Origin: Rhodosorus marinus CCMP1338
Taxonomy: Eukaryota > Plantae > Rhodophyta
Assembly: GCA_029953675.1 (NCBI GenBank)
Contig: JAMWBK010000006.1
Location: 310,001-374,000 of the forward strand
Direction of reading: 5' to 3'
DNA: 64,000 nucleotides
In this document: positions 4,837 through 52,298 of the stretch, in pieces
How the letters are laid out: each line of letters starts with the position of its first letter
Position numbering within the stretch: the stretch's first letter is position 1
Position numbers and translations under genes: made by a program
Notes under the pieces: generated by a model
Databases searched by the model: none
Told to the model about the DNA's origin: nothing
Seen by the model: the letters and a program-made list of their open reading frames with translations, nothing else

Positions 4837-6547
4837 CGCGACTTTCAAAGCACTATCTAAAGATCTTCAAACTCTAAATACCTTTCCGCTCGTTCTTAAT
4901 CCTTCTCATCTCATTCAAGATCCAGTCTTCTACCCCCCCAAAACCCAAACAACTTTCTTACCCTCTCCAACTTTTACACGACTCCATTCTATAGTGGGCA
5001 ACGCTAACACCTCTTTAGTACGTTCTTAATCCAAATCTATTCATTGATATCAGATTATGAATATGTTTCACCTTTTTTGTTCTATAAGACATACATAGCG
5101 TAACTTTGTTCATATTTAGAACTAGATATAGACTTATATTGAAAATCGCATTAGTTAGCTTCACCGGTAAGTCTCCCGCCCGAGATAGTGGAGGCTGATG
5201 TGAAGGCGGCGTTGCCTTGTTGGAGTATTGAAGGAGGAACTGTGCATGTTCTAGCCCTCAGAGCCTGGCTCTTCCAGCCCCGAGGGATAGCAAGAACCTG
5301 GATGTGGTTTTTGATCAAGCGCCTGGTACGCGATGACGCAGTCGGGCCGTATTTCGAACCAGCACTTGAGGGAGATCATACGGAAGAAGGGGTTCGAAGC
5401 GACGAGAGCTGATGTATGTGTGCTCAGGAGGGGATCTCACGATTGTGGCTGTGTATGTGGCATGACCTGTTAGCCATCAGGAAAACGGATGAGGTCGATG
5501 ACGTGAAGAATTTACCGAGGGAGTTATACAGATTGCTGGTATGGACTGTCTGTCGGGTAGGCGTTGGTAGGCATCACATGTAGAAGTGGCTAAACGACGG
5601 TATCAGTATCCAGGTTAACATTTCTGAACGTGTCCTCCCAAGAAGAGCCAGCAGGAAGCGCCAGCAATCTGGTGTCACGCTCCGCACTTCGCACCCGGCG
5701 AGGTAAAAGTGATTAGAATCTACGTTAGTCAGTATGCAGACATTCTACGCTTCTTATAGAGTCCTCCTCGACAGTCCCTCACCTGCACGGCACGCTCCTC
5801 GTGATCAACCCAACACCGTGCTCGAACAAACTCGATTATAGACATTGCGCCAAAATATAAATTAAATACTACATATCATATGCTAATTATTATTCAAAAC
5901 AATTCGTATGAACGAAAATTAAAAACAATCCAAAAAAATTGTTTAAACCTTAAAAAGGAAATATAAATATTCATTTTTAGAAGGATACGCTAGTAAATAA
6001 TATAAATCAAATATATACTTAAAAACCAATCATCATTGGAAATATTTTCGTATTATCAAAAAAAGAATATAATCGCATTTTAATTTATTTTGATTAAATA
6101 TTAAATAAATAATGAAAGATTATTACCGGTTGGTCTTTACTGGATGGTCGTCACGGCGATGGTCGTTGAGGAGACTGATTCAGACTTGAAGAGGAAGGCA
6201 AATGGATTCCGATGAAAGAAGAAGTGGAATGCCTCACGGATTTCGATGGCTGGTTATATTGGAAGGTTACGATGGTTTGAGGAGGACGACGGGTCAGTGT
6301 GGTAGATTGGTAGTCTGAAGGCTATAAATTTTTGCGGTGGGGGTTGGTGGGTGCTGGTCGTGGGAGAGGAACTCGCGGGGTTGTCTTTTGTTCCTTCTGC
6401 GTGAGGTGGAGTGATAGTTCGGTGTTTTCGTTGCTGTTGTTGTTGGAGGATTGGTTGAGAGCAGGTTCGGAGCTGCGGTTTTGGCTGTCCATTTTTTTTT
6501 TTGGTCTGGATTCAGTGATGTGCGGAGTTGGAACGTACTAGGAAAGG

Positions 6548-8767
6548 ATGGTAGCTGCAAAGTGTTGTGAAGAGGAGGGAGAAGGATGTGGGTGTATGGA
6601 AAATGTTGCTGAGGTAAAGCTCAAGGATGCGGCCTACGAGGTGAAGAGGAAGCGTGCAGTCTCGCAAGTTGTGTCCGACCTCATTCGCCTGCATGAGAAG
6701 GGGGATAAAATCAACGTGCAGAAGCTCAAGTCCAACGCAGCTCGTCAGCATGCGCTTCCGGATCATCCTAAGCTTACAGAAATTATCGCAGCCCTGCCAG
6801 AATCGCACATGGAGAGCCTCCTCCCCATTCTCAAAGCGAAACCGGTCAGGACAGCATCAGGAATCGCAATCGTTGCTGTGATGTCAAAGCCGCACCGGTA
6901 AACCGTGAGCAGCAAGCCTCTTCTTTCGCACGCCACTGAAGCCAAAAAGAGTCTCAAAATTTCTCTTTTCTCAACCCTTTAACAGTTGTCCACATATTGC
7001 CACAACCGGAAACATTTGTGTATACTGCCCCGGTGGCCCTGACTCTGACTTTGAATACTCCACTCAGAGTTATACAGGTTACGAACCAACGAGCATGAGG
7101 GCGATTCGGGCTCGCTATGATCCCTATGTACAGGTATATATTTCATAATCAAAAGGACCCTCATCTCAGGTTCATTAGGTCTAAAGCGTACAGTATACAC
7201 TTGCCTCGGTCAGGTTAAGAGCCGCGTAGAACAGCTACGTAGCTTGGGACACAACGTAGATAAAGTCGAATTCATCCTAATGGGAGGAACGTTTCTTTCT
7301 CTTGATACGGGCTATCGAGACTACTTTGTCAGAAACTTACACGACGCGCTGTCCGGTCATACCTCGTACTCTGTTCAGGAGGCAGTCAAGTACTCTGAGC
7401 AGAGCAACGTCAAAGTAGGGCGATCGTTTCCTTCTGTCTCAGCGGTGAAAGAGAGAGACACTTTGTATTTGAGAAACTTACGAGGAAAATTGCAAAACCG
7501 TTCTACTGACACAACAGTGTATAGGACTTACCATAGAGACCCGACCGGACTACTGTCATCGACCCCATTTGAGCTCCATGCTTGAATACGGATGCACAAG
7601 ACTAGAAATTGGAGTACAAAGCGTTTACGAGGACATTGCAAGGGATACCAATCGTGGGCACTCCGTTCAGGCAGTATGTGACTGCTTCCATTTGGCCAAA
7701 GACGCTGGCTTCAAGGTAGGACTTTTTGTCAAAAAAAAACAACGAAACCATCTGATGAAATCTACCTCTGTGTATGCTCGCTTCGGATACTTGGACTTTT
7801 AACCAACGTCTTGTTGCTTGTTTCGCGTTCACTAAAACACCCTCTGTCTCTTCACAACGCAGGTTGTGGCTCACATGATGCCGGACTTGCCTAACATGGG
7901 AATGGAGAGAGACATTGAAAGTTTCAAAGAGTTTTTTGAAAACCCTGCATTTCGACCAGACGGGTTGAAGATCTATCCTACGCTGGTGATCCGTGGAACA
8001 GGATTGTACGAGCTGTGGAAGACGAAGCGCTACCGTAACTACGCGCCAGTTGATCTAATCGACCTGATTGCCCGAGTTCTGGCGTTGGTGCCTCCCTGGA
8101 TGAGAGTCTATCGAATTCAACGAGACATTCCGATGCCGTTGGTGTCTTCTGGAGTTGAAGTTGGCAACTTGAGAGAATTGGCACTGGCGAGAGTAAGGGA
8201 GCTAGGTCTCAAATGTCGGGACGTGCGTACTCGCGAAGTTGGTATTCAGGTAAGGGAAATAGTTGGAGCGTGTCAACCAGAGTTTCAGGCCAAGCACTTA
8301 ACTCTTTTGTCTCCGTTGCCCGCGCCGTACCGTAGGACGTTCATTTCAAGATTCGTCCAGAGGAAATCGAGTTGATTAGGAGAGATTACGTCGCAAACGG
8401 CAGCTGGGAGACCTTTATAAGTTACGAGGACGCAATGCAGGATATTTTGGTTGGGTTGTTGAGGTTGCGAAAAGCTAGTGACATGGCGTTTAGGAAGGAA
8501 CTAGTTGGTACCAAGTGCTCCATCGTAAGAGAACTGCACGTTTACGGGAGCGTTGTACCAGTGCACGAGCGGGATCCGCGAAAGTTTCAGCATCAAGGCT
8601 TCGGGACCTTGCTGATGGAGGAGGCGGAAAGGATTGCAAGAGACGAGCATGGCTCCGAGAAAATGCTGGTTATATCAGGGGTTGGAACTAGGCATTACTA
8701 TAGGAAGCTGGGTTACCATCTGGAAGGTCCATATATGGTCAAATCGTTACTTGAATCTGACCATTGA
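6548..8767 (+). CDS. ELP3: Elongator complex protein 3 (radical SAM + acetyltransferase), multi-exon
   Basis: [37 protein letters not shown] (radical SAM Cys motif), [91 protein letters not shown]. Confidence 0.98.
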
Positions 8768-8862: not shown

Positions 8863-10600
8863 TTAAATATTTGTAGCTGCGACTTGATCCTCTCGACCTT
8901 CTGATTCAACTGCCGTCTTGTTGGCGTGAAATTGTGCCATGGCTTTAAAAAATGGGCTTTCCGTCAAAAGCTTCATCTCGCTTGGTCCCTGGACTGGCAC
9001 CAGATTCCACCAATCGTTCCGACCTCCAGCAGCAAGTGGGATGACGTGACAAACTTTTCTTCCGTTGATACTGGCACCAGTGTATGCTTCGTAGAGTTCT
9101 ATCAGCGTTGACTTTTGGCGCTCGAAAACTTCCATTCGCTCTTCAGCATCCGGGTAACATTTCCACTCGTTCTTCATTCGGACAGCGAATCTGTGAAGAA
9201 AGCAACGTTGAACTTGGTTCAACAGGTTCCCATCAGATAGGATCCTGAGATAGGTTGCCACTTCCTCAAACCCTAGGCCAAATGGTAGCAAGCTGTTCCC
9301 ACCATACACAATAGGGGTCTGAATCAATGGCGAGCGCCCGGATTCGCTCTTGGCAGGAGATCCTGGCTCAACGGTTTGAGAAGAGACCGAGTCTACGGTC
9401 TCAGCGGTCAGAGTTTTAACACGGTTCCTGGTACGTTGACGCCTCTTCTGCCCAAGGGCATCAGAATCTGAAGCCTCTAGCGCTTGTGTGACCTGTGAGC
9501 TTGACGGTTCTGCCCTGAGGTCTTGGACTTCGCCCTCCCCAGCGGCCAGTTGATTACCGCCTTCGTTTCTCTTAGGATGGCTGCGTCCCTCATTGGACTT
9601 TTCTGGAGCTGTTGTAATTACGTCCTCTTCAATGGGGGGGGTCTCGGATAGACTTGCGGCGCCTTTAGAATTTACACCACCGTTGCCAGCTTGTTCTGAA
9701 GATGCTTGGGTCTGGGGTTCCGAAACTGGATCCCTATATGGCCGGTTTCGAGAGGTAGCTTCTCGACTTGCGGGACCGCCATAAATTGATTGCATCAGTT
9801 CTTCCTCCGAGGGTGGATTCGCCAACATGTCTTGAACAGACTCTATTATTCGTAGGAACGCGGTGAGGTAAGTGTACTGGCATAGAACATGATACCAGGA
9901 AAGCCACTGATTACGTGGACCCACGGGAGCCGGCCTCTATGTGCATACTCATATTCGCATTCATGCCCTGGAGACGACCATCAATTTGATCTACTTCGCC
10001 GTTCAAAAGTTCCGACTGGCCTTTTCCATTAAAAGCCGAATGAAAGGATTCGAGGTCCTCGTTTCGGACGATTTCCTTATTTGCACCGCTCTCCGTACCA
10101 ACGGATTCATTAATTTTGGGCGCTCGACTACCAAGGATAGCATGCGATGACGAATCATTTTGCCCCTGCAAAATTCCGGGTCCGTCAATCCCCGAGACTC
10201 GTCTTGGTTCCGACAATATGTCCCCTCCCGTACTAGCAGTTGAGCCTAAGCGTGATTGAGAGGACAGATCATGGAAAGCAGCTCCACTGGTAGGCTCTGG
10301 AAGATGCCCACTTGTCTCCACGGCTCTGTGTCGAATTGTACTTGGATGTTCAACGCCAAGTTTTCCATGTACATAAATTTGCTCAATTTCATGCATTGAG
10401 AGCTTGGTTATTGTGGAAATGCTCGTTCTGTCTTCTTCTGACTTCATCATCCTCCGAGCCACGCACGTCATCGCTTCTTTTCGGCCTTGATACCACGCCA
10501 ATTCACACTCCTGCTGAACAACATCGGCGAGAACCTGCTGGAACTGCTTCGCAGCGGTCTTCGCAGACTGCCGGAAACTAGCAGGAAGCCCATAACCCAT
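8863..10600 (-). CDS. HNH-fold protein A: N-terminal Rpn-C-terminus-like motif, long low-complexity linker, C-terminal degenerate toxin-like HNH domain
   Basis: ORFs 9911..10600 and 8863..9924 join in frame through predicted intron 9948..9843 (A|GTATGC...TAATAG|AG). The C-terminus reads RMEVFERQKSTLIELYEAYTG..KVCHVIPLAAGGRNDWWNLVP. Additional upstream exons cannot be excluded. Confidence 0.72.
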
Positions 10601-11029
10601 CGTTCAACCACTATAAGAAAAAAAAAAGCTACCTGACCCTACTTCAAAGAGTTTGTACTATTAGTTCGAACAAGGGATTCAACCATGAAACAAAGATAAT
10701 CGTCCTTGACCTCTCTGCCCCTCTCTAGACAACCCTCCTCCTGAAAAGCACAAATTCCTTGTGTTTCGTCTATATTTATACGAACAAGCTGGGAGTAAAC
10801 CCCGTCAGAAGTTTCACACACGAATTTTTCACTTGCCTTCAAAACAAACAAAAAATTGATTCCCTGAAGGGTCATCCATCTTGACGCGACACCTTCAAGC
10901 TCGAAGCCATCGCGTTTCCCATCACGACCTATCGCGCATCGATTTCCGGTTTAAATTTCCTCTCTCGCGCCATCCATCCTAGACAGGGAACTCCTGTTAG
11001 TGTCATATGTCCAATCGATCTAAATTTTG

Positions 11030-11170
11030 CCTTGCCAAAAATAAATGGTTTTCTATATCTCATCGTGCTGAACGAAACAATTGAATATTTTATCGCAAAT
11101 ACGAACACGGGTTGAGTTTACTGTCAGGTGTGAGATACTTTTCTGTTTAGAAAGATATTTGACTGGAACA
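11030..11170. promoter_or_regulatory. AT-rich tract between the two divergent HNH genes (probable bidirectional promoter region)
   Basis: A/T-rich stretch like those lying between other divergent gene starts in the window (about 830-1450, 5850-6110, 32100-32460, 58620-58830). Function is inferred from position only. Confidence 0.35.
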
Positions 11171-11803
11171 AATCTCAGGAGGGGGGGGATGAGGGTCATG
11201 TGTTTGAAGCGATGCTTCGTAAGTTTTTGACTTCGTCTAGCGTACTCAGCCGATCACACTCGTCGCTGCCTTACTTCGGTTATGATTGTGGTACTCTGGC
11301 AATCAACGTCCCTTCAGGCGAAAACTGAGCGAATTTGACAATTTTTATTGAATCCGCGGCAATCGGATCGTAGGTTTCCTTTTGGACTGCGGCAACCGCA
11401 GCTGAGGAGGCGTGGAGAACTCTTAGAGAATAATTCAGAAATTCTCCTTAATCTCCGCGGATCCTCGACGACAACCTGCAAAATCGAGCTCAGAAAGTTC
11501 CCCGGGGGAAAACATATTTACTCAAGGAAAAAAACCGGCCCTCAGTTCCGCATAGAGCTACCTTTTTATCTTGCTGAGATTAGTTTGTCCGACTTTGACC
11601 AGCGTTCAGAGCTCACGATAACGAGTCACCAGAGTACCTGTTTTTGATGCAAAATGAGGATCGAACCGAACTCACCAACAAGAGTGGTCTTACGCCCTCG
11701 CCTTCTTGTCCGAGCGACATTTAGGTGTTGGAATGTGAACCAAGACTCCGGGAATAGAGGGTAAGGAAGAATAGCGGCATCGTAAGGGACTTGGTTTACG
11801 TGG

Positions 11804-12436
11804 ATGTCTACGAACAAGATGGTTCGCCTCAATTCACTTATGTCAACCTCCAATTTGGTCTTGGAGGCAGTGTATGCCCACAAACGTGGACAAGGATTCA
11901 GTGTTAGTGAGAAAATGTTTGAAGAGTACCTGATGAAGCTCTCGCAGAGAACCTATCTCGTTGATCATCAAGTGGAGGTGCTGATTGAGTTCAACAGATC
12001 GGCGACTTATTACTTCGCCACAGATGTAGCAGCTGTCAGGAGACAATATTACTATTCGAGGCCAAGGCTACTTCGGGAATGGGGTTTGATGCGCAGAGAA
12101 GTCGCTTTCTTTCCGTAGTATCTCAAAACGAAATTTGTTCCGTTCCCATGCGTGTGCACCAGAGTTCGAAACTGGAAGAAGCTTCGCATACTCGCATAAC
12201 TCTAAAACTCTTCGAGAACAAGGTCAAACCACATGCCATCACATAATTCCCCTCAGGGTCACTGGTCCAGCGAATGGCTTCTGGTGGAACATATGTGAGT
12301 TCTACTCTCTAGTAGTTTTCGAACTCCGACGATGACAGCTGGGCCGTGGATGACCGTGTCACGCTCTGCCGTAGGTCCCTTGACAACGAGAGATCATTCT
12401 GAGATGCATCAGCGAAGAAACGACCCTTTCCTGTGA
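11804..12436 (+). CDS. HNH endonuclease B, bacterial polymorphic-toxin-like, 3 predicted exons (about 157 aa; 5' end uncertain)
   Basis: Exons 11804..12083, 12163..12294 and 12375..12436 join through introns GTTTGA..CACCAG (79 nt) and GTGAGT..CCGTAG (80 nt). The product reads ...RRQYYYSRPRLLREWEFETGRSFAYSHNSKTLREQGQTTCHHIIPLRVTGPANGFWWNICPLTTRDHSEMHQRRNDPFL*. Confidence 0.75.
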
Positions 12437-12799
12437 TCGAGCATCAGGTCATTTCCGCCGCAAGTGCGAGGTTTGTGAAAGGCTACAACCATAAAGCTTT
12501 GCCTGTTTGATGTATTGCAAGGACTTACGGATCCAAAGGCAAAGCTGGCTAGACAAGAAACAACTAGGATAATCGGAGGTAGACACTCTGCGTTCACCCG
12601 CACTCACTCTCACAAGCGAATGAATGCTCACAGTTCAACTCCCCAGATTGCGAACAATGTTCTCCTCTATTAAACTCAATGAACGAAGTCTTGGGTTCGA
12701 AGGGATACACCCTGGGTTTTGCTTCTAGAACCTTCCCAGTACACACCAATTCCTGTTCGCCCTATGGCAATGGTTTGGACGCTAGGAACACTTGCTCAT

Positions 12800-49871: not shown

Positions 49872-52298
<2,427 letters not shown>

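Follow-up and report, generated by a model that had tools for sequence, protein, structure and literature searches.

Here we describe a head-to-head pair of genes, A and B, from the red alga Rhodosorus marinus CCMP1338 (class Stylonematophyceae), located in a stretch of 64,000 nucleotides (positions 310,001 to 374,000 of contig JAMWBK010000006.1, in the chromosome-level nuclear assembly GCA_029953675.1). This whole stretch is called the window, and coordinates refer to it. The two genes share a domain of about 115 residues of the type of the bacterial toxin Rhs2CT. We propose that they constitute an acquired Rhs2CT-type DNase pair in which B would be the active enzyme and A a pseudo-nuclease, and that both would be co-expressed divergently and act jointly; we give this statement as a whole a probability of roughly 55%. 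Its descriptive core, that is toxin ancestry, residence and expression in a eukaryote, an intact copy paired with a degenerate one, a conserved divergent layout and no immunity gene, is highly probable. That A acts on B is the tentative part of the proposal and rather less likely than not. The pair is built as follows.

10600..8863, minus strand: gene A, one intron, 543 residues, ATG at 10600
10600..9949, minus strand: exon 1 of gene A, a conserved helical N-terminal domain of about 75 residues, then the start of a variable linker
9948..9843, minus strand: intron of gene A, 106 nt, GT..AG, phase 1
9842..8863, minus strand: exon 2 of gene A, disordered linker and C-terminal degenerate HNH-like domain; stop codon at 8863..8865
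10601..11803: divergent intergenic region, 1203 bp, ATG to ATG
11804..12436, plus strand: gene B, two introns, 157 residues
11804..12083, plus strand: exon 1 of gene B, a disordered N-terminus of 30 residues and the helical N-terminal half of the toxin-type domain (..FEEYL..L...Q...L....R..Y....RLLREW)
12084..12162, plus strand: intron 1 of gene B, 79 nt, GT..AG, phase 1, with an in-frame stop and a frameshift inside
12163..12294, plus strand: exon 2 of gene B, EFETG, a loop, CHHIIPL (12234..12254) and GFWWNI, forming the beta-hairpin of the HNH core
12295..12374, plus strand: intron 2 of gene B, 80 nt, GTGAGT..AG, exactly between the beta-hairpin and the metal-binding helix
12375..12436, plus strand: exon 3 of gene B, PLTTRDHSEMHQRRNDPFL and the stop codon; HxxxH metal ligands in DHSEMH (12392..12409)

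Homology of A and B to a bacterial toxin domain

An initial annotation of this DNA, made from the sequence alone, had described A and B as sharing one extended domain, and the peptides that it quoted were found where it had placed them. BLASTP alone gives a modest result (E 6e-6 over only 44 residues) and the alignment offered in that annotation was suggestive only; the claim is borne out by hhalign, which aligned the A family with the B family over 106 columns (97.1%, E 5.4e-11). Against a family made up of bacterial sequences only, the B family aligned over 115 columns (99.3%, E 1.2e-20) and the A family over 92 columns (98.2%, E 3.5e-14). A hidden Markov model (HMM) of 40-odd bacterial sequences, run on all 1341 six-frame open reading frames (ORFs) of the window and on the spliced products, recognized B (2e-18), A (5e-6) and their orthologues on L002, a contig of a more distant relative described below (2.4e-13 for B, 5.7e-10 for A). 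Among the 1341 window ORFs the same HMM retrieved nothing beyond the B exons and exon 2 of A, that is, no extra copy.

When B was compared with the sequences of the PDB by phmmer, a single match was obtained, 8cm0_A (E 0.042), which is Rhs2CT, the C-terminal toxin of the type VI secretion system effector Rhs2 of Serratia marcescens Db10 and a metal-dependent DNase (8CM0/9T38); the alignment reads ARKEF..L..WE..TG..HHIIPL.GG..WWNL.P. A profile of the 16-sequence family alignment retrieved Rhs2CT from the PDB with E 1.7e-13, followed by the pyocin AP41 DNase, McrA and colicin E7, and in this search H..IH of the family was aligned with H-S-E-I-H of pyocin AP41. Relatives beyond Rhodosorus and a few unnamed fragments were recovered only by exhaustive phmmer, and not by word-indexed searches with B, the A domain or the family alignment. 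Two proteins from exhaustive phmmer, P0008 and P0016, are tandem-repeat proteins that match residues 123-146 of B only and were treated as spurious. YeeF was also rejected as closest relative; one match carries the label COG5444/YeeF, and YeeF is classed as Endonuclea_NS_2, another His-Me clade.

Profile alignments and the fold model of B together support the view that A and B carry an HNH/EndoVII (His-Me finger) nuclease domain of bacterial polymorphic-toxin type, homologous to the bacterial family over its full length. The s[AGP]HH..HxxxH motif of the family is similar to the signature published for Tox-GHH2 (PMC3482391). Searches with the specific Pfam toxin clades (Tox-GHH2, AHH, LHH, WHH, GH-E) gave only isolated weak matches among the family, and NCBIfam gave no relevant match.

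The bacterial family and its genomic contexts

A scan of one genome per bacterial species detected 36 loci with the domain, distributed among Bacillaceae, Paenibacillus, Planctomycetes, Verrucomicrobia, Acidobacteriota, Lachnospiraceae, several Proteobacteria and a Rickettsiaceae endosymbiont. In P0010 the domain architecture is PT-VENN, DUF6862, PT-TG and toxin domain, followed by an overlapping SMI1/KNR4 (SUKH-1) gene; in Cerasicoccus a PT-HINT/toxin protein precedes SUKH; and in Priestia megaterium an LXG ORF lies immediately upstream of the PT-TG/toxin ORF, which is followed by SUKH. A SUKH gene is present downstream in all four bacterial loci in which the downstream gene was scanned. Bacteria deliver the domain on Rhs proteins (type VI secretion), LXG proteins (type VII secretion) and related carriers, and the SUKH protein serves as the immunity factor that neutralizes it. 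The Rhs2CT-like family is a genuine polymorphic-toxin warhead. These contexts, together with the match to Rhs2CT in sequence and fold, agree with the assignment to HNH/EndoVII polymorphic toxins made in the initial annotation, and its link with LXG effectors of the type VII secretion system also holds, as the Rhs2CT alignment carries the motif that it gave and the Priestia locus provides the LXG neighbour.

The algal genes are found in a different setting. Pfam reveals no carrier or pre-toxin module (LXG, Rhs, PT-TG, PT-VENN, PT-HINT) in A or B, and a SUKH-like sequence is absent from the whole window and from L002. A bacterial C-terminal HNH (beta-beta-alpha-metal) DNase warhead may have been taken up by a red alga without its SUKH immunity.

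Two further observations concern the bacterial members. P0014, a bacterial protein of 1511 residues from an ENA metagenome, has two tandem C-terminal toxin domains, which is unusual among polymorphic toxins. P0009/P0021, P0012 and P0019 (loci L005-L008) are small proteins with a signal peptide and a single toxin domain; their neighbourhoods are ordinary bacterial ones, apparently alphaproteobacterial, with no obvious adjoining SUKH. Secretion, instead of contact-dependent delivery, may be the way in which these proteins act as effectors.

Fold and catalytic residues

The AlphaFold2 (AF2) model of B has a predicted local distance difference test (pLDDT) above 90 nearly throughout residues 30-157, with a loop at about 101-120 scoring 54-78, and consists of three helices followed by a beta-beta-alpha unit. 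The strands span residues 116-120 and 137-141 and the helix 142-148; pLDDT is 78-84 in the first strand (means of 10-residue blocks) and 94 in the second strand and helix. Foldseek places Rhs2-CT as the best match of this model (probability 1.0, target template-modelling score TMt 0.64), with weaker matches to Cas8-HNH, McrA, colicin E7, GVE2 HNH and teneurin C-termini. The model of the A domain (about residues 402-521, 9291..8932) is of low confidence and too uncertain for a detailed reading; the order of its secondary structures is the same and its best fold match is again Rhs2-CT.

In Rhs2CT, H1369 is the HNH general base and H1368, H1394 and H1403 are metal ligands, with H1368 and H1369 on strand 1. 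B has a full catalytic set: H119-H120 on strand 1, N136 in WWN, and H145 and H149 in HxxxH, the latter motif being present in all B orthologues. As the alignment with Rhs2CT ends short of the distal histidines, these are equated with H1394/H1403 from their position and from the pattern seen in pyocin and colicin. We infer that B is an active metal-dependent DNase, since the nearest characterized relative has DNase activity only and the ligands of B follow the colicin/pyocin pattern. Two elements of A carry the comparison:

9034..9051, minus strand: motif CHVIPL of A, with the first His of the family replaced by Cys482 and the general-base His483 kept
8932..9012, minus strand: segment WWNLVPVQGPSEMKLLTESPFFKAMAQ of A, with the WWN hairpin kept, HxxxH absent and the A-specific tail LL...PF.KA kept in L002

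The HxxxH motif is missing in both A orthologues that cover the region (GPSEMK in A, KKEREE in the L002 orthologue), and its loss and the A-specific tail that takes its place are common to both full-length A orthologues. H483, GG and the WWN hairpin with N497 are retained in A. At the first position of the HH pair R. marinus has Cys, whereas the A orthologue of L002 has His there and thus HH plus Asn. A is predicted from these replacements to be a pseudo-nuclease unable to hold the catalytic metal. The contrast drawn in the initial annotation between an active nuclease and a dead partner is therefore kept in part: the motif set of B is intact and A lacks HxxxH, but A, judged by its residues, still has the general-base histidine and GG..WWN.

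The tripeptide SEM occurs at the same domain position in A (PSEMK, 8992-9006) and B (HSEMH, 12395-12409) of R. marinus and not in the L002 pair; coincidence or a local gene conversion from one neighbour to the other could account for it.

Residence and expression in the alga

The genes lie on opposite strands inside a 2.47-Mb nuclear contig of R. marinus, amid ELP3 and further eukaryotic genes. ELP3 (radical-SAM plus GNAT acetyltransferase) is intron-containing, extends from about 5400 to 8767 on the plus strand and is convergent with A, the two stop codons being 96 bp apart. The GC (guanine plus cytosine) content of the A/B region is like that of the adjoining sequence. The genome was published with 8,392 genes and 24,821 introns (PMC10250338); A and B are neither mentioned in that paper nor listed among its candidates.

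Transcribed relatives were found in a second Rhodosorus lineage, where P0001, P0003, P0004 and P0005 represent B (65% identity as called, 78% over the domain without the retained intron 1). Window positions 11300..12727 have collinear counterparts in transcript contig L001 and in contig L045, both of which keep the two GT..AG pairs. The removal of intron 2 as predicted is seen in P0003, an MMETSP isoform (..WWNIC|PMTRRDHSEIH..). The removal of intron 1 restores the family motif ..REWEFETG.., which is contiguous in P0006, the intronless B orthologue of L002, and in the bacterial homologues; in the second lineage this predicted intron has 78 nt, is in frame and contains no stops, and no transcript was seen with it spliced out. 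For A, a one-gene model is adopted because the L002 orthologue holds the N- and C-terminal domains in a single uninterrupted ORF. The layout of divergent, intron-containing genes some 1.2 kb apart is therefore as initially annotated, with 1203 bp between the ATGs, GT..AG introns and one of them confirmed by a transcript.

Retention of intron 2 leads to a protein that ends ahead of HxxxH. This is the case of P0001, P0004 and P0005, three of the four B products of the second lineage (from MMETSP, JGI and Logan). Such retention could be regulated, or it could reflect unprocessed RNA or DNA. The predominance of unspliced B transcripts, together with the fact that the non-algal family members found are all bacterial, might suggest that the genes are bacterial contamination, decaying pseudogenes or a mobile HNH homing endonuclease. 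We find this hardly credible, given the position inside a large nuclear contig between eukaryotic genes and syntenic on L002, the GT..AG introns with one spliced transcript, and reading frames that are intact in three lineages, with a ratio of non-synonymous to synonymous substitution rates (dN/dS) of 0.41 for B between the Rhodosorus lineages and invariant catalytic motifs. Concerning a homing endonuclease in particular, A and B are free-standing, outside any intron or intein, syntenic in two organisms and single-copy in the window. The acquisition of the A/B domains from bacteria by horizontal transfer to a eukaryote is well supported, because the genes sit on a nuclear contig, have spliceosomal introns and are represented by MMETSP transcripts; this point of the initial annotation is upheld.

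Conservation of the pair

The exhaustive phmmer search with B identified P0006 (E 1.8e-18) on Logan contig L002 and added about ten bacterial proteins. L002 carries ELP3, a minus-strand A orthologue and plus-strand P0006, in the order and orientation of the window. It comes from a more distant relative: protein identity between window and L002 is 90.6% for the last ELP3 exon, 36-37% for B and 34% for the A domain. Neither A nor B is interrupted on L002, where each is a single ORF; this indicates that the Rhodosorus introns were gained after acquisition, as had been proposed. Intron gain and the existence of an intact/degenerate pair are well supported.

In a neighbour-joining (NJ) bootstrap tree the A sequences group together with 100% support and the B sequences with 94%; the two clades are not joined as sisters, and P0009 groups weakly (39%) with the algal B clade. 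A single transfer followed by duplication is a plausible origin for A and B. Concerning the duplication claimed initially, the homology of the two domains found by hhalign stands, whereas the status of A and B as sister copies was not recovered in the tree.

Several observations weigh against the joint-action reading. Besides the failure of the tree to unite A and B, their adjacency is weak evidence of functional coupling, because ELP3 is adjacent on L002 as well and the arrangement may reflect general synteny. P0002, a partial A of the second Rhodosorus lineage, has an ORF that ends after ..FLHRFAVRMKN (about window position 9170), ahead of the HNH-like core. This stop may be a true truncation or a transcript artefact; if the end is real, the A domain would be dispensable in that lineage. 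The A orthologue of the second lineage was not found in two metagenome-contig scans. The dN/dS value given above corresponds to only moderate constraint on B. The AF2 model of the A domain has a pLDDT of 60, which is low confidence, and Pfam scores are sub-threshold for both proteins (B with PF01844, 13.7 bits for a gathering score of 21.4; A only with HNH_5, 13.2 bits vs 27.5). Within the family, 16 of 20 members scanned match PF01844 at E <= 10 and only P0013 (27.2 bits) exceeds its gathering score; the Rhs2CT-like family has no dedicated Pfam model.

Some of these data would fit a situation in which A and B work independently, B as a repair, recombination or degradative nuclease and A as a DNA-binding protein or scaffold; an inverted duplication at this site would then have left the layout behind, and nothing would yet have broken it up. 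Collinearity with L002 extends over the whole ELP3-A-B block, as local synteny is generally kept; the tree does not unite the two clades; P0002 may lack the HNH-like core; and A possesses a conserved N-terminal domain and a long linker of its own, absent from B. However, the A domain keeps YTG, H-x-x-P, AGG.NDWWN and LL..PF.KA at a divergence at which B itself has only a little over a third of its residues identical, and this retention suggests that selection still acts on the fold, for which DNA and proteins like itself are the only partners known. We regard independence as possible, though doubtful.

The divergence between window and L002 also bears on whether the locus is a selfish or defensive toxin-antidote module, either an addiction or drive element or an antiviral abortive-infection system, with B as executioner and A as labile antidote. 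A and B evolve fast (about 35% identity) compared with the adjoining ELP3 (about 90%), the catalytic set is intact in B and degenerate in A, and the ancestral bacterial toxin is always accompanied by an immunity gene in the loci scanned. On the other hand, two divergent organisms have the locus fixed at a syntenic position, the window contains only one copy of it, nothing points to presence/absence polymorphism, no PADLOC defence model is matched, and a viral fold library gave generic weak HNH matches only, with no close viral relative. Such a module is accordingly improbable, and the reading preferred here is still that of a resident pair acting together.

The intergenic region

By homology with transcript contig L001, positions 11300..11803 belong to the 5' untranslated region (UTR) of B, which measures at least 500 nt. 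It contains upstream ORFs (uORFs) at 11647-11764, of which a minimal start-stop uORF, ATGTGA at 11733-11738, is kept in L001 and L045 and the others are not. The spacing between the two ATGs, 1203 bp in the window (of which the 5' UTR of B leaves no more than about 700 bp), compares with 695 bp on L002, and sequence conservation between the intergenic regions of window and L002 was not detectable. From the geometry of the locus, a promoter region shared by A and B is plausible. A single short control region would then drive both genes in opposite directions, their products acting together, and the uORFs and the retention of intron 2, which removes the metal-binding helix, may further limit the expression of B.

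Non-nuclease regions of A and B

The N-terminal helical domain of A, of about 75 residues, is 48% identical to that of the L002 orthologue. Its residues 61-68 (10420..10397) form a weak helix-turn-helix (HTH)-like element, ISTITKLSMHEIEQI, and the pattern IS..T.LS..E....I recalls helices 2 and 3 of small HTH domains; this likeness rests only on a weak match to a designed repeat protein, beyond which no other Pfam or PDB relative was found for the domain. A match to SUFU was of low complexity and is regarded as spurious. The linker of A is long, variable and disordered and carries a basic patch, KRRQRTRNR (9447..9421), that resembles a nuclear localization signal (NLS).

B consists of the toxin domain preceded by 30 residues, which the AF2 model shows as disordered; all three B orthologues have a basic N-terminus here, rich in Ser/Thr and with hardly any acidic residues. 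This composition, the NLS-like patch of A and the unusual mitochondrial DNA of the host lineage could indicate that B is an organelle-targeted nuclease acting on mitochondrial or plastid DNA while A works elsewhere, for instance in the nucleus. In Stylonematophyceae the mitochondrial genomes are recombining minicircles present in high copy; the host lineage combines its unusual mitochondrial DNA with a modified set of recombination genes (PMC10250338). Nevertheless, an argument from N-terminal composition alone is weak, and B is not among the candidates of that paper; we see only a slim chance for this explanation.

Proposed joint action of A and B

Under the reading that we prefer, the homologous domain would allow A to restrain B, to chaperone it or to target it, in the manner of ICAD with CAD (DFF45 and DFF40), where an apoptotic nuclease is restrained by an inhibitor-chaperone that shares a homologous domain with it. 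A killed toxin copy may in this way have taken the place of the lost SUKH immunity protein. Carried further, immunity would have been re-invented by duplication of the toxin and removal of its metal site, giving rise to a chromosomally fixed executioner and a pseudo-toxin inhibitor, released on demand and with intron retention as a safety catch. This extended scenario is unlikely as it stands. Viral attack, stress, programmed DNA degradation or organelle-DNA turnover might be the triggers of release.

An intact toxin copy that stands beside a degenerate paralogue, with no bacterial immunity protein, constitutes a compact system to ask how a eukaryote tames a lethal DNase after its transfer. 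It adds a candidate nuclease to Stylonematophyceae, a red-algal class with unusual organelle DNA, and if A does control B, the pair would be a natural case of immunity evolved from the toxin itself.

Other features of the window

Rfam and tRNA scans of the window gave no matches. At 49872-52292, on the minus strand, there is an intronless gene for a CDC48/p97 AAA-ATPase (806 residues) that adjoins genes for ribosomal protein S13 and an aminotransferase of class IV (L003).

Comparison with known systems

Rhs2CT is the best sequence and fold match for both A and B. The likeness covers the whole domain of about 115 residues, with F..YL..L...QR..L....R..F...K..LI.EWE..TG followed by HHIIP..GG..WWN..P and the histidine ligands. 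Rhs2CT acts on bacteria and also kills yeast from inside the cell. The algal genes differ from it in lacking carrier and pre-toxin modules as well as an immunity gene of the SUKH or RhsI2 type, in being nuclear and interrupted by introns, and in forming two divergent paralogues. The ligands are also arranged differently, as a compact colicin-type HxxxH in B and on a long loop in Rhs2CT. In this respect B shares the HH...N...HxxxH signature of colicin E7/E9 and pyocin AP41 (H-S-E-I-H in the pyocin, H-S-E-M-H in B), whereas the helical N-terminal half is specific to the Rhs2CT-like family and unlike colicin, pyocin and PF01844 HNH domains.

The likeness with CAD and ICAD is a functional analogy only, with no sequence relationship. 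The domain that they share is the regulatory CIDE-N and not the nuclease domain, and their genes are not neighbours. CAD, of the CIDE clade, is itself an HNH-fold nuclease with a proposed polymorphic-toxin ancestry (PMC3482391). The teneurin Tox-GHH domain of animals derives from a bacterial YD/Rhs polymorphic toxin and has lost its histidines and C-terminal helix (PMC3482391). It resembles gene A as a eukaryotic take-over of an HNH-fold polymorphic-toxin domain with lost histidines, but it belongs to another HNH clade, is carried on an Rhs/YD shell, is extracellular and restricted to animals, and has no intact partner beside it.

The transfer of polymorphic-toxin domains to eukaryotes was already established (PMC3482391), and such domains have repeatedly seeded eukaryotic innovations, as in teneurins, the CIDE/CAD nuclease and deaminases. 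Literature searches returned no report of the Rhs2CT-type family in red algae. To these systems the R. marinus locus adds a new host lineage, a toxin family of its own and a conserved arrangement in which a degenerate copy accompanies an intact one in place of an immunity protein.

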